A program made the position numbers and the translations under genes. From the NCBI GenBank assembly GCA_002269645.1, contig NIVC01002717.1, positions 1 to 64,000 of the forward strand: DNA of 64,000 nt, in the 5' to 3' direction. Below the pieces are notes generated by a model. That model saw only the letters and a program-made list of their open reading frames with translations, made no database searches and was not told where the DNA came from. Each line of letters starts with the position of its first letter. Positions within the stretch are counted from its first letter, which is position 1. This document shows, in pieces, positions 8,340 through 23,999 of the stretch. This DNA is from Macrostomum lignano (Eukaryota).

Positions 8340-9110
8340 TGGATACTTGCTATCAGGGGGATGCTTGCTCTTGGGGGTGGAGAGTACTTGCTATCTGAGA
8401 GGGGGTTGCTAGATATCTATAAGGTATCTTTGTATCCAGGTTATGCTTGCTATCAGGGGTTGCTTGCTGTCTGGGGGATGCTTGCTATCTGGGGGGGGGA
8501 TGCTTGCTATCTAGGGGATGCTTGCTATCTGCGGGATGCTTGCTATCTGGGGGATGCTTGCTATCTGCGGGATGCTTGCTATCTGGGGGACGCTTGCTAT
8601 CTGGGGTCTGGGGAATGCTTGCTATCTGGGGATGCTTGCGATCTGGGGGATGCTTGCTATCTGAGGAATGCTTGCTATCTGGGGGATGCTTGCTATCTGC
8701 GGGATGCTTGCTATCTGGGGGATGCTTGCTATCTGGGGTCTGGGGGAATGCTTGCTATCGGGGGATGCTTGCAGTCTGGGGGATGCTTGCTATCTGGGGA
8801 TGCTTGCCATCTGGGGGACGCTTGCTATCTGGGGTCTGGGGGAATGCTTGCTATCTGGGGATGCTTGCGATCTGGGGGATGCTTGCTATCTGAGGAATGC
8901 TTGCTATCTGGGGGATGCTTGCTATCTGCGGGATGCTTGCTATCTGGGGGATGCTTGCTATCTGGGGTCTGGGGGAATGCTTGCTATCGGGGGGATGCTT
9001 GCAGTCTGGGGGATGCTTGCTATCTGGGGATGCTTGCTATCTGGGGGATGCTTGCAGTCTGGGGGATGCTTGCTATTTGGGGATCAATGCTTGAATGTTG
9101 TCTGAGGATG
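8340..9110. repeat. 18-bp minisatellite (gatgcttgctatctgggg)
   Basis: Direct periodicity; it generates the spurious CYLGDA-repeat ORFs. Confidence 0.95.
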
Positions 9111-9432
9111 CTTGCTGTCTTGGGATGTTTTGTTTTTAAGAGGGAATGTCTGTTGTTTTTTCTGAAGGCTTTATTTCGCTGTCTATTTGTTATTTGTAAA
9201 AAACAAGGATTCTATCCAGATGCCCCCCATCGGGGGGCAAAGATTGCTAGTTATATACTCAATTCAAATGCAATAAAATTAGACTTGTCTAAAATCAATT
9301 AAATTAGCATACTAGGTTCAGTTTCTAAGCATTTTTAAAAACAATTCTAAAAAGCTAGCAGCTTTGGCCAATAAGTTCCTTAGGCTTAGAGACATACATG
9401 TGCAACAGTTGGCTAATTAGTACGATTTGGCG

Positions 9433-13288: not shown

Positions 13289-13978
13289 ATGTCGAGCGGC
13301 GGCCTGACAGACGCGGACGTTGACAAGCAGATCAAACAGATGATGGCCTTCATTGAGCAGGAGGCGAATGAGAAAAAAGAAGAAATTGACAACAAAGCCG
13401 AAGAGGAGTTCAACATTGAGAAGTCGCGCATTACGCAACAGGAGCGAGTTAAAATAATGGACTTCTACACGAAGAAGGAGAAGCAAATTGAGTTGCAGAA
13501 GAAGATTCAATATTCTAACATGAAGAATCAGGGCCGGTTGAAAGTTCTACTGGCACGCGATGAGCATCTGAAATCGGTGCTAGAGGACACTACTCAGCAG
13601 CTGCGTCAGATCACTGGAGATCGGGCTCGATACGAGCAGCTAATCGAGAGCCTCATCACCCAGGGCCTGTTCCAGCTTCTCGAACCCGCTGCCGTGGTTC
13701 GCTGCCGTGAAGCCGACACCGACATCGCCGAGAAAGCCCTCGGCGCGGCCATCAATCGGTACAAAGAAGCCACTGGTAAAGAGGTGAAAGTGTCGCTAGA
13801 TAAGAAGGCCTTTTTACCTGCTGACTCCGTTGGCGGTGTGGATATTGTTGGCAGGGAGGGCAAAATCCTTGTGTGCAACAATCTGGAGAGTCGACTGGAG
13901 CAAATTAGCCAGCAGATGGTGCCGGAGCTGAGGCACATCCTGTTCGGCCCCAATCCCAATCGGAAGTTTATGGATTAG
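13289..13978 (+). CDS. ATP6V1E: V-type proton ATPase subunit E, intronless
   Basis: 229 aa: L.DADV.KQIKQMMAFIEQEANEK.EEID.KAEEEFNIEK.R..Q....KIM.FY.KKEKQIELQKKIQ.SN..NQ.RLKVL.AR..GG..I...NNLESRL...LFG.NPNRKFMD. Confidence 0.97.
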   Translation: MSSGGLTDADVDKQIKQMMAFIEQEANEKKEEIDNKAEEEFNIEKSRITQQERVKIMDFYTKKEKQIELQKKIQYSNMKNQGRLKVLLARDEHLKSVLEDTTQQLRQITGDRARYEQLIESLITQGLFQLLEPAAVVRCREADTDIAEKALGAAINRYKEATGKEVKVSLDKKAFLPADSVGGVDIVGREGKILVCNNLESRLEQISQQMVPELRHILFGPNPNRKFMD

Positions 13979-14610: not shown

Positions 14611-15539
14611 CAGTAAGCCAGGTTAAAAAAGGAAATGCAGTTATACCAAGCATACTACTATTGCTGCATCGAAGTTCTGTTACGTGCGAATCAAACCATG
14701 ATCACCAAAAATGTAGTAAACTATTATAATTTCTAACAAGCTTATGCTCAGTATGTTTTAGAAATTGAATTGAGTATCAAAAGTATGATTAAAATATCGT
14801 TTAATATTCTTGTTTCCATAAAAGCGCGCGCTTTCTACACTACTGCGCTGTCAGTGGTCAGTAGTGCAACTAGTTTATTTCTCCAAGCATAATAGCAGTG
14901 CAGTTGCGCTATGCTTTCTTGGTTTGTTTGCTGATTTTACATTAAATTATGCATAATTTCAATGCTCATTGATTCCATTAAATATCCTATTAAGTTTACT
15001 ACGAGCAATATGTAATAAATGCAATAGTTATCCCGAAGATATATTCTGACTTAGTATTTTCAATTTTATGATGCGAGAATTGTGACGTTTTAGTCTAGCT
15101 CTTTTTTGCGCAATATTTATTGAGTTATTGCTTATTTTGATGTATCCAAGGTGCAAGGTTCAAGTTTAGAGCAGATGGCAGATTGAGAGCACTAGGCTTT
15201 ACATAAATTTTTTTCAATTACTTGTTATCGTGTTATTACGAGCTATTTGTAATTTATTGCGCGGTGCCAATTATTTTATCTTCCCGTCTTCCTGGTTGCT
15301 GATTTCGTCACCTTTACAATAAAATCATTAAATATAAGCTAAAATAAAATGCTGGATAAACTAATTTTATTTAGTCTTAATATTGGTTTGTTATTGTGTC
15401 ATCATTTTTCCATTATTTCCAATTAGTATGCTAAAATGTTTTGACTGCTACTGAATATTGTTGCCAGTAGGTTGGTAAGCATATTGATGTATTAATAATT
15501 TGAAAAATCCCTTAAAATTCAGATTTTTTTTAAAACGAC

Positions 15540-18500
15540 ATGTCTGCCAGCTACGGCGGTGAGCAGCAACAAGAGGAGGTCGCTGGTTCGAATCCTTGCT
15601 TGCCGCCGTCGCAGACGCCTCGCGGCCGTGTCGGCTTCTGCATGTGGATTGTGGGCCCATTAATCTACGTTTGGGGCGGCTACGAGGTGCAGCGCAGGTT
15701 GCCGGCGAGCTTCTGGCCTCAGCCTGTGGCCTTCGGCGCCGGCGGAATTCATAATCAGCTGCAACAGCAGCAACTGCTGCTTCAGCATCTGCAACAGCAC
15801 CTGAACGAGTCGGATTCTGACGATGAGTCCGACTCTGATGAGGACATTGACCAGCAGGAACAGCAGCAGCTGGCGCCCCAGCTGCCGCCACCTCCGTTTC
15901 CACTGGAAGAAGCATTCGCTGACGATATTGACGACGAGTTTGCTGATGACGATTTTGTTGACGATGATGATGAGGATGATGTTGATCAGCCTGGTGAGTT
16001 CGTCTGGTTCATGCTTGAGTTATTGTTTTAGAATGCGCTTTTTTCCTTTGAATGTACTGCTTTTTTTGCTTTTTGTTAAAATGTACTTTTATTTGTACTT
16101 TTAAAATGTACTTTTTAGGTTTTGTTGGAATGTGATTGCAAATCTTACAATAAAAATTCCTTTTAAGACTTGTTATAATGTAATTTTTTGTTTCTTTTAT
16201 GTACTTTTAATTTTTTGTTTAAATGTACTTTTAAGTTCCGTTAGAATGTACTTAAAAACTTTTGTCAGAATCTACGTCTAAGTTAATTACTAGGCTTTAT
16301 TATATCTTTTCTATTAGTCAAATTTTTAATTTAGCATGAATTTGTCTTACTATCTATTGCTATTTGTACGTATAAATTTTCTTTTAAAAATGACTCACTG
16401 CTATCCTTTATTAATCACCTGCTAGCACCGCCACCTGCTGTCCAGAATCTTGGCGGCGGCATCAACAACGCCAATCAGCCGAATGCACTGCCAGCTCGCA
16501 GGCCGGATGTCTATCGCCAATCTACCTGGGTGCCAGGAGACCGACTGCTGTGCTATTGCACCGACAGTCGCAGATGGGTATGGCACGCTGCTGATGGATG
16601 TCGTACTGGGATTTTCACTGCCGATGCTCTCCTCCCTCAGATCCTTCAGTTTCTGATGCTCTCCTCCCTCAGATCCTTCAGTGTCTGATGCTCTCCTCCC
16701 TCAGATCCTTCAGTGTCTGATGCTCTCCTCCCTCAGATCCTTCAGTGTCTGATGCTCTCCTCCCTCAGATCCTTCAGTTTCTGATGCTCTCCTCCCTCAG
16801 ATCCTTCAGTTTCTGATGCTCTCCTCCCTCAGATCCTTCAGTTTCTGATGCTCTCCTCCCTCAGATCCTTCAGTGTCTGGTGCTCTCCTCCCTCAGATCC
16901 TTCAGTGTCTGATACTCTCCTCCCTCAGATCCTTCAGTTTCTGATGCTCTCCTCCCTCAGATCCTTCAGTGTCTGATGCTCTCCTCCCTCAGATCCTTCA
17001 GTGTCTGATGCTCTCCTCCCTCAGATCCTTCAGTGTCTGATACTCTCCTCCCTCAGATCCTTCAGTGTCTGATGCTCTCCTCCCTCAGGCCCTTCAGTGT
17101 CTGATGCTCTCATCCCTCAGGTCCTTCAGGACCTGATTCTCCTCTTTCAAAATCAGATCATTCAGGGCCTGGTTTTCTCCTTCCTCAGGTCCTTCACGGC
17201 CGCCGCTACCCTCAAACTACATCAACATGTTCCTTCCACCAAATTCAACAGGTGAAAATACGCCTGCATCTTGAAGGGCTTGGCAGCAACACCCATCAAC
17301 TCCGCAATTTCCTGTCCGGTTTTTCCGGCTCAGCTTGCTGCTCAAACTCGGACGACACCAGACTGTACATAAGCGGCGGATTCAATGAAACTGTTCACAC
17401 TGCCCTGTCCGCAACTAATGCTATTTATTCTATTCACGTGAATTGCAATACGAGTAGGCAGACAGATGCCGCTGTTTATTCAGTTTCCTGTCAGTTTAGT
17501 ATGGAGACGAGGTGAGTTGGCGCTCCTGTCATTGCTGCGCCCTAGCTGTTCTTGGGTGTCTGTGAAGGTTCAGGTCAGGGTGTCTGTGAAGGTTCAGGTC
17601 AGGGTGTCTGTGAAGGGTTCAGGTCAGGGTGTCTGTGAAGTGTTCAGATCAGAGTGTCTGTGGAGGGTTCAGATCAGAGTGTCTGTGAAGGGTTCAGATC
17701 AGAGTGTCTGTGAAGGGTTTAGATCAGGTATCTGAGGGTTCAGATCAGGTATCTGAGGGTTCAGATCAGGTATCTGAGGGTTCAGATCAGGTATCTGAGG
17801 GTTCAGATCAGGTATCTAAGGGTTCAGATCAGGTATCTAAGGGTTCAGAATCAGATCAGGTATCTAAGGGTTCAGATCAGGTATCTGAGGGTTCAGATCA
17901 GGTATCTAAGGGTTCAGATCAGGTATCTAAGGGTTCAGATCAGGTATCTAAGGGTTCAGATCAGGTATCTGAGGGTTCAGATCAGGTATCTAAGGGTTCA
18001 GATCAGGTATCTAAGGGTTCAGATCAGGTATCTAAGGGTTCAGAATCAGATCAGGTATCTAAGGGTTCAGATCAGGTATCTAAGGGTTCAGATCAGGTAT
18101 CTAAGGGTTCAGATCAGGTATCTAAGGGTTCAGATCAGGTATCTAAGGGTTCAGATCAGGTATCTAAGGGTTCAGATCAGGTATCTAAGGGTTCAGAATC
18201 AGATCAGGTATCTAAGGGTTCAGATCAGGTATCTAAGGGTTCAGATCAGGTATCTAAGGGTTCAGATCAGGTATCTAAGGGTTCAGAATCAGATCAGGTA
18301 TCTAAGGGTTCAGAATCAGATCAGGTATCTAAGGGTTCAGAATCAGATCAGGTATCTAAGGGTTCAGATCAGGTATCTAAGGGTTCAGAATCAGATCAGG
18401 TATCTAAGGGTTCAGATCAGGTATCTAAGGGTTCAGATCAGGTATCTAAGGGTTCAGAATCAGATCAGGTATCTGTACCGGTAGGGTGTCTGTAGGTTCA

Positions 18501-20607
18501 GTCAGTGTGCCTAAACAGTAGGATGAGAAATCTATTTTCGTCGCTAAAAATCTTCGCAAAAAATCCTTCGCTATTTTAAATTGACGCAGGGGCCCGCCAG
18601 GCCAGCGGGTGCCCATGCCCCGGGACAAGCACAGTGCCATCTACTGGCGCAACCGTTTGTTAATATTTGGTGGCTACTGTTTGAATCCGCCAACAAATCT
18701 AATGAACTCGGTGAATTATTGCGGCTCTTCAATCAGTCTGCAGGACGTGTTCTTCAGTCCCGAGTGCTTCCAGCCTAATGACAGTTTGCGGTTCGCTTGG
18801 TCCAACGAATTGCTGCAGTTTGACTTAGCCACGGGCGCTTGGAGCCAGCTGCATCGTAATTATACTTACATATATCTCCAATATTCAATATTCATGGTAA
18901 TCCCCATCCCATGAAAATGCCTATATCCTTTAGTCCCTATCCCACGATAATCCCAAACTTCGTTAATCTCCATCAACGACAATCCCAATATCCGTTATCC
19001 CCCACCCACGATAATCCCAATGTTCGTTAATCCTCATCCCACGATAATCCCAATGTTCGTTAATCTTCATCCCACGATAATCCTAATCTCGTTAATCCCA
19101 TCCCATTATAATCCCAATGTTCGTTAATCCTCATTCCACGATAATCCCAGCCTTCGTTATCCCCCACCCACGATAATCCCAATATCCGTTATTCCCCACC
19201 CACGATAATCCCAATATCCGTTAATCCTCATCCCATTATAATCCCAATGTTCGTTAATCTTCATTCCACGATAATCCTAATCTTCGTTATTCCATCCCAC
19301 GATAATCCCAGCCCTCGTTAATCTCCATCCCCGATAATCCCAATATTCTTTGTTCATTATCCCACGATAATCCCAATGTTCGTTAATCCTATCCCATGAT
19401 AATCTCAATTTTCGTTACTCCCCATCCCATCCCATAATCCCATAAGACCCCCTATTCATATTCATACCCAGTTAATCCCCACGCGGCTCACCCTAACCTG
19501 TTGGCACCAACTGGATTTCAGCCGAAGGCACCCCGCCGACGCCTCGCGCCGCCCACTCGATGATTCGCGTTGGCTCTCGCGCCCTGCTATTTGGCGGCCG
19601 GGTCCTTGACAGGCGAACAAACGACCTGTTCTGCCTGTGCCTCGAGTCGCTTCAGTGGACCCGGCTGCAGCCGCAAGGCTCGCTGCCCGAGCCTCGGTCA
19701 TGGACCACCTTTGTCCAGGTGGGACCAAGTCACGTGTTCTGCTTCGGCGGCTATCCTTGGGCTGATCCGCCTGCCGAGCTGCGGCCTTTTAATAATTGCT
19801 TCCTGTACGACCTGGTTGGCAACCGCTTCCAGAAGCTGAAGGTAACGACTTTTCAATTTGTGTGTTGGGTCACGTCGGGTGAGGTCAGGGGTCAGTTGTG
19901 TTCAGGTTCAATCCAGGTCATTATTGGTTATGTGCGTTTTCGAAAATTAATCCAAGTCGCACGTTACGTTTGTATTCAGCGATCAGTCTTGGTCGGGGTG
20001 TGTAATTAAGGTCATTCCAGGTCAGGGTGTGTAGTTAAGGTCACTCCAGGTCAGGGTGTGTAGTTAAGGTCACTCCAGGTCAGGGTGTGTAGTTAAGGTC
20101 ATTCCAAGTCAGGGTGTATAGTTAAGGTCATTCCAGGTCAGAGTGTGTAATTAAGGTCTCTCCAGGTCAGGGTGTGTAATTAAGGTCACTCCAGGTCAGG
20201 GTGTGTAATTAAGGTCACTCCAGGTAATGGTGTGCAATTAAGGTCACTCCAGGTAATGGTGTGCAATTAAGGTCACCCCAGCCCATATCGCACCCCATCG
20301 CCCCCAGCTGCCCGACCGGCCAGGCCTGCTGTGGCACGGCAGCTGCTCCCAGCTGGCCAATCGCAGCGCCTTCATCTGGGGCGGCTGCACCGAAGACATT
20401 ATGCAGCAGGCCTATCGCCGCGACTTCAACTCAACCGTGCTGGAATTTCCTCGGCTGCTGGTGCCACCGCTGTCCGCTCTGTGCGCCGACCTGGTGGTCC
20501 GCTCGCCCCTGGTGTATCCGCTAGGGATGCTGAAATCGCATTGGCCAGTTACTAAGGAGCTCATTCAGCGCCGGCTGCTCATGTCCGGCCCGCTGTTGGG
20601 CGGATAA
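15540..20607 (+). CDS. KLHDC2: KLHDC2/KLHDC1-like kelch-repeat protein with C-terminal BC-box (CRL2 substrate receptor); 6 exons, ~583 aa
   Basis: Exons 15540-15993, 16426-16577, 17252-17511 (alternative in-frame acceptor 17189), 18590-18855, 19522-19841, 20308-20607. All junctions are GT-AG and phase-consistent (1752 nt). Motifs YVWGGY, SGFSGSAC..LYISGGF, PRDKHS..LLIFGGY, WSNEL, PTPRAAHS..LLFGGRVLDRRTNDL, PRSW..FCFGGY, LLWHGSC..FIWGGC and VPPLSALCADLV (BC-box-like) parallel human KLHDC2. Confidence 0.85.
16625..17150. repeat. 32-bp minisatellite in KLHDC2-like intron 2
   Basis: gatgctctcctccctcagatccttcagt[t/g]tct, ~16 copies. Confidence 0.95.
17555..18490. repeat. 21-bp minisatellite (ggttcagatcaggtatctaag) with 27-bp variant, intron 3
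   Basis: Direct periodicity; it produces the spurious GSDQVSK ORF. Confidence 0.95.
18930..19470. repeat. Degenerate ~33-bp minisatellite (cccacgataatcccaatgttcgttaatcctcat), intron 4
   Basis: Direct periodicity. Confidence 0.9.
19990..20275. repeat. 29-bp minisatellite (caggtcagggtgtgtagttaaggtcactc), intron 5
   Basis: Direct periodicity; it contains AGGTCA-n4-AGGTCA. Confidence 0.95.
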
Positions 20608-20699
20608 ATTTGACACGGGCTTCATTCCTGGGCTCCCTGGTGGACTCATCCGCATTGGTTATTGCTGGAGTGTTGTACAGCTTGTCTAATCTCCTTGTG

Positions 20700-21690
20700 T
20701 GCCTCATCTCTGACCTGTCTCTCTCTCATCTCACCTGTCTCCCTCCCATCTCACCTGTCTCCCTCCCATCTCACCTGTCTCCCTCTCATCTCACCTGTCT
20801 CCCTCTCATCTCACCCGTCCCTCTCTCATCTCACCTGTCTCTCATCTCACCTGTCTCCCTCTATCTCACCTGTCTCCCTCTCATCTCACCTGTCTCCCTC
20901 TCATCTCACCCGTCCTTCTCTCATCTCACCTATCTCTCATCTCACCTGTCTCTCATCTCACCTGTCTCTCATCTCACCTGTCTTCCTCTATCTCACCTGT
21001 CTCCTCATCTCACCCGTCTCTCTCTCATCTCACCTGTCTCTCATCTCACCTGTCTTCCTCTATCTCACCTGTCTCCTCATCTCACCCGTCTCTCTCTCAT
21101 CTCACCCGTCTCTCTCTCTCTCTCATCTCACCTTTCTCCCTCTCATCTCACCCGTCTCTTTCTCATCTCACCTGTTTCCCTCTAATTTCACTTGTCTCCC
21201 TCTCATCTCACCTGTCTCCCTCTCATTTCACTTGTCTCCCTCTCATCTCACCTGTCTCCCTCTCATTTCACTTGTCTCCCTCTCATCTCACCTGTCTCCC
21301 TCTCATCTCACCTGTCTCCCTCTCATCTCACCTGTCTCCCTCTCATTTCACTTGTCTCCCTCTCATTTCACTTGTCTCCCTCTCATCTCACCTGTCTCCC
21401 TCTCATTTCACTTGTCTCCCTCTCATCTCACCTGTCTCCCTCTCATCTCACCTGTCTCCCTCTCATCTCACCTGTCTCCCTCTCATTTCACTTGTCTCCC
21501 TCTCATCTCACCTGTCTCCCTCTCATCTCACCTGTCTCCCTCTCATTTCACTTGTCTCCCTCTCATCTCACCTGTCTCCCTCTCATTTCACTTGTCTCCC
21601 TCTCATCTCACCTGTCTCCCTCTCATTTCACTTGTCTCCCTCTCATCTCACCTGTCTCCCTCTCATTTCACTTGTCTCCCTCTCATCTCA
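20700..21690. repeat. 20-bp pyrimidine-rich minisatellite (ctcacctgtctccctctcat)
   Basis: Direct periodicity, starting ~90 bp after the KLHDC2-like stop codon. Confidence 0.95.
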
Positions 21691-22189
21691 CCTCTCTCCG
21701 TCAGTTTTCCAGCATAGGCAATGTACCTATCGCTGCAGATACACAATAGACCAGCCGGCTTATGCAAGCGTATTGCTACCGCTTTACTACTTTATAATAT
21801 TCAAGCACCAGAGTTGATTTTGTGTACATATCAAATTAAGAAGTCTTTGTTTTCTGTCCAATTGCTTGTGAAAAAAAACCTTGTTTGTTTTGCAGTTTCT
21901 ATAAATTTTGTGATCATTGGCTTCAAAAACATTTTAACTACTTTACAAAGATTTTTGATGGCAGTTATTGTTAGTAAGTACAATTTAGCAGTCTAATATA
22001 TAAATAAATAATTGAATGATTGTTCATTTCATGTTAGAATACAAATTGTCACTGCTTTCAAACTTCTTTACTGTTTTCTTCTTCAATAATTTTGTTCATT
22101 GTTTGTAACCAAGATTTAGTTAGGTTCACTCTAACTTGGTAAAAAAAAGTCGCTCTGGTATGCCAGAATCATTTTATTAGTTGTCCCTC

Positions 22190-23030
22190 TGGTACATCAG
22201 TGACCCTCTAGATTGTCAGTCTGGTACATCAGTGACCCTCTAGATTGTCAGTCTGGTACATCAGTGACCCTCTAGATTGTCAGTCTGGTACATCAGTGGC
22301 ACTCTAGATTGTCACTCTGGTACATCAGTGGCACTCTAGATTGTCACTCTGGTACATCAGTGGCACTCTAGATTGTCACTCTGGTACATCAGTGGCACTC
22401 TAGATTGTCACTCTGGTACATCAGTGACCCTCTAGATTGTCACTCTGGTACATCAGTGGCACTCTAGATTGTCACTCTGGTACATCAGTGGCACTCTAGA
22501 TTGTCACTCTGGTACATCAGTGGCACTCTAGATTGTCACTCTGGTACATCAGTGGCACTCTAGATTGTCACTCTGGTACATCAGTGGCACTCTAGATTGT
22601 CACTCTGGTACATCAGTGGCACTCTAGATTGTCACTCTGGTACATCAGTGGCACTCTAGATTGTCCCTCTGGTACATCAGTGACCCTCTAGATTGTCAGT
22701 CTGGTACATCAGTGACCCTCTAGATTGTCAGTCTGGTACATCAGTGGCACTCTAGATTGTCACTCTGGTACATCAGTGACCCTCTAGATTGTCACTCTGG
22801 TACATCAGTGGCACTCTAGATTGTCACTCTGGTACATCAGTGGCACTCTAGATTGTCACTCTGGTTCATCAGTGGCACTCTAGATTGTCACTCTGGTACA
22901 ACTGTGATACTGTAGATTGTCACTCTGGTACAACTGTGATACTGTAGATTGTCACTCAGGTTCATCAGTGGCACTCTAGATTGTCACTCTAGTACAACAT
23001 TGGCACTCGAGATTGTCACCCTGGCACATC
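22190..23030. repeat. 32-bp minisatellite (ctggtacatcagtggcactctagattgtcact)
   Basis: Periodicity e.g. 22321 and 22353; ends ~60 bp before the RBM42 ATG. Confidence 0.95.
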
Positions 23031-23093
23031 AGTAAAATCTGTACTTAAATTTACTTTACCAAAGAACAGCAGGTCCTCTCCCCTACCATATTC

Positions 23094-23999
23094 ATGCATC
23101 GCTACCCCTACAGCACTGCCGCGGCTGCTGGAGCCGCTGCGGCCGCCGCTGCACAGCCGTCGGCCAGAGGTTTAACCGCCAGCCGTCGCCTTGAGATGGA
23201 AGCCGAAGTGAATCGATTCGAAGCCGAGCTTCGGCAGGACTTGAGACCGCAGGCGCCCATCCAGCAACAGCAGACGGGTTTCGGAAGCTTCCCGCCGCCT
23301 CCGCCCCCGCCGCCTCCGATGCCTTCCCAGGCTCCGCCGGCATCTCAGTTTCTTCCTCATCATCAGCAACTGTCCATGCCGCCTAGGACTGTGTACTCTG
23401 CTCAGCCTCAGATTGTTCGCCAGCACCAGCCATCGCCTGCGGCTGCTGTCGTTGCGGCCCCCTTGCCTCCCCCGCCGCCCCCGCCACCCCCGCCGCCTCC
23501 TCCTCCGATGCCCTCCATGCCGATGATGCCTTCGGCTGCAGACGCCAGCCAGGCTGCATTTCCTGGAGCACCTGGTGCTGCCGCTTCTACTTCTAGTAGC
23601 AATACTAAAAACAGCAAAAAGAAGCGATTCGTCAGAACGGCCGGCGGGCAAGTGTGGGAAGACCCAAGCTTAGCCGAATGGGATCCGAACGATTTTCGAA
23701 TCTTCTGCGGCGATCTTGGCAACGAAGTTAACGACGACGTGTTGACCAGAGCGTTCAGCAAGTACGGCTCGTTCCAGAAGGCCAAAGTGGTGCGAGACCA
23801 CCGCAGCAACAAGAGCAAAGGCTACGGCTTTGTCAGCTTCAAAGATCCGCAAGATTTTGTTCGCGCACTGCACGAAATGAATGGCAAATATGTTGGCAAT
23901 CGGCCTATCAAACTGCGCCGTAGCAACTGGAAGGAGAGAGAGATCACTTCGGTGAAGAAGAAAATTAAAGAGAAACGTAAAATGGGTCTCAAGGTGTGA
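23094..23999 (+). CDS. RBM42: RNA-binding protein 42 (Pro-rich N-terminus, C-terminal RRM), intronless
   Basis: 301 aa. R.AGGQVWEDPSL.EWD..DFRIFCGDLGNEVNDD.L.RAFS...SF.KAKVVRD.R.NKSKGYGFVSFKDP.D..RA..EMNGKYVG.RPIKLR.S.WK.R is the RBM42 signature. Confidence 0.93.
   Translation: MHRYPYSTAAAAGAAAAAAAQPSARGLTASRRLEMEAEVNRFEAELRQDLRPQAPIQQQQTGFGSFPPPPPPPPPMPSQAPPASQFLPHHQQLSMPPRTVYSAQPQIVRQHQPSPAAAVVAAPLPPPPPPPPPPPPPPMPSMPMMPSAADASQAAFPGAPGAAASTSSSNTKNSKKKRFVRTAGGQVWEDPSLAEWDPNDFRIFCGDLGNEVNDDVLTRAFSKYGSFQKAKVVRDHRSNKSKGYGFVSFKDPQDFVRALHEMNGKYVGNRPIKLRRSNWKEREITSVKKKIKEKRKMGLKV

Follow-up and report, generated by a model that had tools for sequence, protein, structure and literature searches.

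A predicted KLHDC2-type C-degron receptor of the flatworm Macrostomum lignano ends in the Gly-Gly degron consensus

Known C-degron receptors and their C-terminal tails

Human CRL2-KLHDC2 recognizes proteins with Gly-Gly ends, and the receptor's own Gly-Ser end fills the pocket of a neighboring protomer in a KLHDC2-EloB/C tetramer, an assembly that additionally needs KLHDC2-EloC contacts and is described as a kinetic filter for substrates (PMC11568203, PMC11470957). According to PMC12035522, the portion inserted in the pocket comprises residues 400-406, and the Gly-Ser mimic is weaker than substrates because the additional atoms of Ser406 are held to push Trp270 aside. The neddylated, substrate-free tetramer autoubiquitylates KLHDC2 (PMC11470957). 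In the pocket itself, Arg236, Ser269, and Arg241 form the trio that holds the terminal carboxylate of the substrate, surrounded by the aromatic residues Tyr163, Trp191, and Trp270 (PMC11568203, PMC11377542). A first, sequence-only reading of the locus described here took Gly-Gly degrons, a weaker Gly-Ser mimic, and autoinhibition by self-assembly as established, in agreement with this literature.

Among the relatives, KLHDC3 (His-Gly end) forms tetramers, and KLHDC1 and KLHDC10 are reported without oligomerization (PMC11568203, PMC12035522). All three resemble the protein of the free-living flatworm Macrostomum lignano in part. The C terminus of KLHDC3 likewise resembles its own degron class (ends in Arg/Lys/Gln-Gly); unlike the flatworm protein, KLHDC3 belongs to another clade, is a weaker fold match, and carries its Arg-Ser-Arg trio in blade 5. 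KLHDC1 and KLHDC10 are also Gly-end C-degron receptors with Elongin B/C boxes; they differ in the absence of observed oligomerization, in the use of CUL5 by KLHDC1, and in the Leu-Lys end of KLHDC10.

The closest counterpart is human KLHDC2 (PDB 8EBN, 8SH2, 6DO3), with which the flatworm protein shares a six-blade Kelch propeller, the Arg-Ser-Arg trio, the Tyr/Trp/Trp cage, the lysine equivalent to K147, a BC box, a helical cullin-box-like segment, and a flexible, Gly-x-ended tail. It differs from human KLHDC2 in its last residue, which is Gly instead of Ser and makes the tail a consensus degron rather than a weakened mimic, as well as in a disordered stretch of 120 aa inserted into blade 1, additional loops in blades 3-4, a Cys in the BC box where the human protein has Ser, and the hydrophobic spacing of the Cul box.

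Gene model, fold, and degron pocket

The gene lies in a 64,000-nucleotide stretch of M. lignano contig NIVC01002717.1 (the window), where a reading of positions 14800-21500 yielded a model of six exons on the plus strand between 15540 and 20607, with GT-AG at every junction:

15540..15993 (+): exon 1, with ATG at 15540; GT-AG model, in frame, identical to PAA64144.1; it codes for the initial blade strands (GRVGFCMWIVGPLIYVWGGY) and the larger part of a ~120-aa acidic/Gln-rich insert predicted to be disordered
16426..16577 (+): exon 2, acceptor ending ctgctag, donor beginning gtatgg
17252..17511 (+): exon 3, acceptor ending caacag, donor beginning gtgagt
18590..18855 (+): exon 4, with the codons of K302 (18627-18629), Y318 (18675-18677), and W359 (18798-18800)
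19522..19841 (+): exon 5, with the codons of R404 (19599-19601), R409 (19614-19616), S437 (19698-19700), and W438 (19701-19703)
20308..20607 (+): exon 6, the last, encoding blade 6, the predicted Elongin/cullin-binding domain of three helices, the tail, and the stop
20605..20607 (+): stop codon TAA, read from the sequence

The joined exons give 1752 nt in frame and a 583-aa Kelch protein with the C terminus ...MSGPLLGG, which matches GenBank PAA64144.1 ("hypothetical protein BOX15_Mlig020824g3") from end to end with 100% identity. The GenBank annotation of this assembly (Mlig_3_7) was made from a genome-guided RNA-seq transcriptome and TransDecoder open reading frames (PMC5730564), so the C terminus of PAA64144.1 has transcript-level support. 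Positions 20560-20607 translate as LIQRRLLMSGPLLGG followed by the stop, and the final codons are CTG TTG GGC GGA TAA, with Leu (TTG) at 20596-20598 and the two glycines at 20599-20601 and 20602-20604. The Gly-Gly end that had been read from the last codons at 20596-20607 is therefore in the reading frame of the gene, and its stop is the annotated stop of the transcriptome-derived model.

By both sequence and predicted fold, the protein is a six-blade Kelch propeller closest to KLHDC2. A sequence search of the PDB returned human KLHDC2 as the top match (E = 2.3e-32), ahead of KLHDC3 (6.6e-16) and KLHDC10 (7e-12), and Pfam assigned the KLHDC2/KLHL20/DRC7 Kelch domain (PF24681, 4.5e-38). In an AlphaFold2 monomer built on a 20-sequence alignment (mean pLDDT, 70.6), pLDDT was above 90 for the majority of the 10-residue blocks in blades 4-6 (about aa 360-540), and the top 26 Foldseek matches in the PDB were all human KLHDC2 (E down to 7e-28; target TM, 0.74-0.88), followed by KLHDC10 (2e-18) and KLHDC3 (3e-17). 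The protein is nonetheless very divergent, with about 27% identity to human KLHDC2 and large inserts. A rough neighbor-joining tree, only indicative given that it has no support values and no KLHDC3 or KLHDC10 outgroup, placed it as a long branch at the base of the KLHDC2 group, with an "MGNE" family that has no BC box lying across the split; at best, it is a co-ortholog of KLHDC1/2.

The MGNE sister family consists of KLHDC2-like propellers with a myristoylation-like start, MGNE(A/G)S. Its members retain the Arg-Ser-Arg trio, have PEPRSF in place of GRSW, and are without a BC box; one of them is labeled "KLHDC1-like" by NCBI. The ~120-aa Gln-rich/acidic insert of the M. lignano protein (aa ~59-178; window positions 15700-16500) lies inside propeller blade 1 and is predicted to be disordered (pLDDT <50). 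It is absent in the other invertebrate orthologs, and one fish KLHDC2 has an acidic N-terminal extension instead.

Four motifs had been proposed from the letters as an intact degron pocket, and all four were found and matched to human KLHDC2: PRDK (aa 299-302), AWSN (358-361), FGGRVLDRR (401-409), and PRSW (435-438) pair with human SSKDK, RGWND, FGGRYRDAR, and GRSW in a HMMER alignment to the full-length protein (8ebn_A, 406 aa). The human numbering given with these motifs (K147, W191, R236/R241, S269/W270) is correct in this alignment, which equates K147 with K302, Y163 with Y318, W191 with W359, R236 with R404, R241 with R409, S269 with S437, and W270 with W438. The Arg-Ser-Arg trio is kept as R404, S437, and R409, all encoded in exon 5, and the aromatic cage (Y318, W359, and W438) and K302 are kept as well. 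Across 20 orthologs, the seven pocket residues are invariant or show conservative swaps (Y/F, S/T). Together, the alignments and the structure model support the identification of the gene as encoding a KLHDC2-type receptor with an intact degron pocket.

We also noted features of the surrounding DNA. Four of the five introns (introns 2-5) and the 3' flank each contain different minisatellites, in 10-51 copies, at 16623-17129, 17554-18463, 18898-19442, 19991-20281, 20703-21699, and 22181-23033 (units of 32, 21, 33, 29, 20, and 32 bp, respectively); intron 1 has short low-copy repeats only. Upstream lies an intron-less V-ATPase subunit E open reading frame (13289-13978, +; PF01991, 3e-65), and downstream lies a gene for an RRM protein that is RBM42-like by eye (23094-23999, +). 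The gene order V-ATPase subunit E, KLHDC2 type, RRM is repeated on a duplicate contig, NIVC01004315.1, where the minisatellite array lengths differ. Farther upstream, an open reading frame at 8361-9302 (+) has weak hexapeptide-repeat and eIF2B-epsilon LbH matches, below or near the Pfam cutoffs, and is probably an exon of eIF2B-epsilon or of a related left-handed beta-helix gene.

C-terminal domain and tails across animals

The AlphaFold2 model ends in three helices (539-549, 556-561, and 568-577) and a flexible tail, and three features were located in this region:

20467..20496 (+): BC box PLSALCADLV (aa 538-547), within the predicted helix 539-549
20542..20586 (+): Cul-box-like segment WPVTKELIQRRLLMS (aa 563-577), aligned with human LPKHLLHSVNQRF and including the last predicted helix, 568-577
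20584..20604 (+): C-terminal tail SGPLLGG (aa 577-583), predicted to be flexible and closing with Gly-Gly, the degron consensus (GGC GGA, 20599-20604)

The BC box, which the sequence-only reading had not listed, fits the consensus [STP]LxxxCxxx[AILV]; L539 is kept in 19/19 orthologs aligned at that column, and C543 is Cys or Ser in 20/20. In the Cul-box-like segment, WP (563-564) aligns with LP of the human Cul2 box, but the spacing of the hydrophobic residues departs from that of the human protein and is no clean match to the Cul2-box pattern, so the cullin partner is not assignable from sequence. From the Cul-box proline (P564) to the C terminus there are 19 residues in the M. lignano protein, as in human and fish KLHDC2, and in the alignment, the M. 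lignano end is flush with the vertebrate ends. The tail follows a Ser-Gly-Pro helix break, and its last five residues (579-583) are predicted to be flexible (pLDDT <50). In the AlphaFold2 monomer, the tail is not docked, an outcome that carries no information on binding in trans. The receptor's own C terminus is the cognate degron consensus (Gly-Gly).

A comparison of invertebrate KLHDC1/2 C termini, which had been proposed as a check, found -GG again in Ciona and varied ends elsewhere. We surveyed the tails of about 13 true KLHDC2-like proteins, chosen by length and coverage among the matches listed. An exhaustive representative search was dominated by multi-Kelch giants, and the full-length query was swamped by the low-complexity insert, with only the M. 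lignano protein and one fish KLHDC2 passing. The tails were as follows:

Mammal KLHDC2: ...NNTSGS
Fish KLHDC2: ...INTLGS
Tick (Amblyomma, several sequences): ...GSGLDGS
Ciona intestinalis: ...KMAGEGG
Macrostomum: ...GPLLGG
Bivalve: ...TCVIS
Annelid: ...TCSIS or ...TCAIS
Hemichordate: ...SCVVS
Corals: ...GKI, ...SKM, or ...DRR
Starfish: ...PRSL
Barnacle: ...KPVV
Trichoplax: ...RGI
Two further KLHDC2-like sequences: ...NAAV and ...DIQD

Gly-Gly or Gly-Ser ends occur in 4/13 sampled lineages (vertebrates, ticks, Ciona, and Macrostomum), where about 1% would be expected by chance (binomial P about 8e-6, or about 3e-4 with chordates counted once); for Gly-Gly alone, the expectation is about 0.5% of random tails. 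This recurrence above chance makes self-recognition plausible. Many invertebrate orthologs have no Gly-ended tail of any kind, and the variation of their ends implies that mimicry is no family-wide requirement. The recurrence argues that a self-recognizing tail may be a selected though dispensable feature of the family, with Gly-Gly as one of its normal states.

The -GG end is not unique to M. lignano, since the C. intestinalis ortholog (XP_078490033.1/F6TR45; ...SKMAGEGG) also ends in Gly-Gly. This protein has the same invariant pocket; its tail is 15 rather than 19 residues past the Cul-box proline, and it is without the disordered insert. In the rough neighbor-joining tree it groups with vertebrate KLHDC2, so the Ciona Gly-x and vertebrate Gly-Ser ends may share ancestry. 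The tick KLHDC2-like protein also has a Gly-ended, mimic-type tail, conserved among several tick sequences, which is 22 residues long and, unlike that of M. lignano, ends in Gly-Ser as in vertebrates. Our literature search returned nothing on Gly-Gly-ended KLHDC2 orthologs, although Scott et al. 2023 (Mol Cell) may already align orthologs.

The bivalve (Mactra), annelid (Paralvinella), and hemichordate (Ptychodera) orthologs have CaaX-like ends (CVIS, CSIS/CAIS, and CVVS, respectively). These motifs suggest that prenylation or membrane anchoring may replace the Gly-ended self-recognition tail in those animals.

Readings of the Gly-Gly tail

By analogy with human KLHDC2, the gene product would serve an Elongin B/C-cullin-RING ligase as its substrate receptor and recognize Gly-Gly-ended proteins. 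The flexible SGPLLGG, which follows the last helix of the cullin-box-like domain, would enter the degron pocket of a neighboring receptor, so that free receptors would assemble with one another into an inactive state with blocked pockets. To bind, real substrates would need to outcompete the tail, and the block would last until a substrate with a fast on-rate competes; an unoccupied receptor would be exposed to autoubiquitylation by its own ligase, as in the human system. This is the likeliest of the readings considered here, and we hold the chances evenly balanced that the M. lignano tail plugs the pocket of another receptor molecule in this manner. Tail-in-pocket binding, oligomerization, and the strength and consequence of the block are all inferred. 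As the degron consensus itself rather than an attenuated version of it, Gly-Gly should give a plug that binds no more weakly than that of the human receptor, and the tightness of autoinhibition would presumably depend on the oligomer interfaces in addition to the tail. Points against the plug are the nonconserved tail ends of invertebrates, the extra KLHDC2-EloC contacts on which the human tetramer depends, the divergent Cul-box spacing, the ~27% identity, and the undocked tail of the AlphaFold2 monomer.

A wrong C terminus, in which another 3' exon or splice in the mature mRNA would leave the protein without its Gly-Gly end, appears very improbable. The gene sits in repeat-rich DNA, where transcript assembly may err; against this, our independent GT-AG model equals the transcriptome-derived annotation exactly, in two genomic copies, and the flush alignment with human and fish KLHDC2 likewise speaks for the modeled end. 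The last 60 nt of the gene contain no consensus-like splice donor, and the GTs close to the gene end stand in poor donor contexts only (cat/GTCCGG and gct/GTTGGG). Downstream of the stop there are just a 1-kb minisatellite with a 20-bp unit, AT-rich DNA, and a single AATAAA (22003), the sole one before the next gene, that of the RRM protein starting at 23094. An alternative donor or additional 3' exon was accordingly rejected, as there was no convincing donor and no coding-like sequence downstream. The second M. lignano copy, PAA47840.1 (contig NIVC01004315.1), likewise ends in -GG. We rejected it as independent support for that end, since its DNA is ~98% identical, including in the single intron compared outside repeats, and it is thus a recent duplicate.

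If the end is real, it could still be a chance state of a fast-evolving, unconstrained C terminus with no regulatory role in M. lignano. This explanation, which we consider unlikely though a serious contender, draws on the wide variation of ortholog tails despite an invariant pocket, on two M. lignano copies too recent for constraint to show, and on the finding of no other flatworm KLHDC2 ortholog among the matches listed in full-length, C-terminal-half, and profile searches. It fits poorly with the recurrence of Gly-Gly and Gly-Ser ends far above chance and with a tail length past the Cul box exactly equal to the human one, and a free Gly-Gly end on a protein with an intact Gly-Gly pocket is unlikely to stay unbound. 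The flexibility of the tail after its helix break would also permit it to fold into the pocket of its own molecule, giving a closed monomer instead of a tetramer; this is improbable, given that the AlphaFold2 monomer leaves the tail undocked at pLDDT <50 and that the equally long tail of human KLHDC2 reaches the neighboring protomer and not its own pocket (PMC11568203, PMC12035522). A bolder possibility, which we regard as doubtful, is that, through its Gly-Gly tail, the receptor becomes a genuine target of the ligase to which it belongs, with unoccupied receptor continuously destroyed in trans and substrate-bound receptor spared; Gly-Gly (Macrostomum and Ciona) would then be the older state and the Gly-Ser of vertebrates and ticks a later attenuation. 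If so, receptor abundance would track substrate load, and the change to Gly-Ser would have converted self-destruction into reversible autoinhibition.

Returning to the plug in trans, the sequence-only reading had anticipated a variant regulatory logic from the -GG end, which goes too far: autoubiquitylation already occurs with the human Gly-Ser tail, so -GG would be a quantitative variant and no new logic, and the "much tighter" autoinhibition or self-destruction loop that it foresaw is pure inference. Gly-Gly looks like a normal state of the known KLHDC2 mechanism. We conclude that the M. lignano protein can be viewed as a naturally occurring case of the known KLHDC2 C-degron-mimic arrangement with Gly-Gly in place of Gly-Ser, for which a regulatory role is plausible by comparison with the human receptor.

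In the human receptor, the Gly-Ser tail is regarded as suboptimal by design, letting real substrates displace it. Natural orthologs with a full Gly-Gly end (Macrostomum and Ciona) are ready tests of this idea and could reveal whether the ligase is locked by a consensus plug, is shorter-lived because of it, or makes up for it elsewhere; transgenesis is possible in M. lignano, so the tail is editable in vivo. The stakes are moderate, in that the finding refines a known mechanism and does not point to a new system. Across the family, the pocket is constant and the tail has varied among Gly-ended, CaaX-like, and unrelated forms, a pattern that suggests repeated rewiring of how this ligase is regulated.
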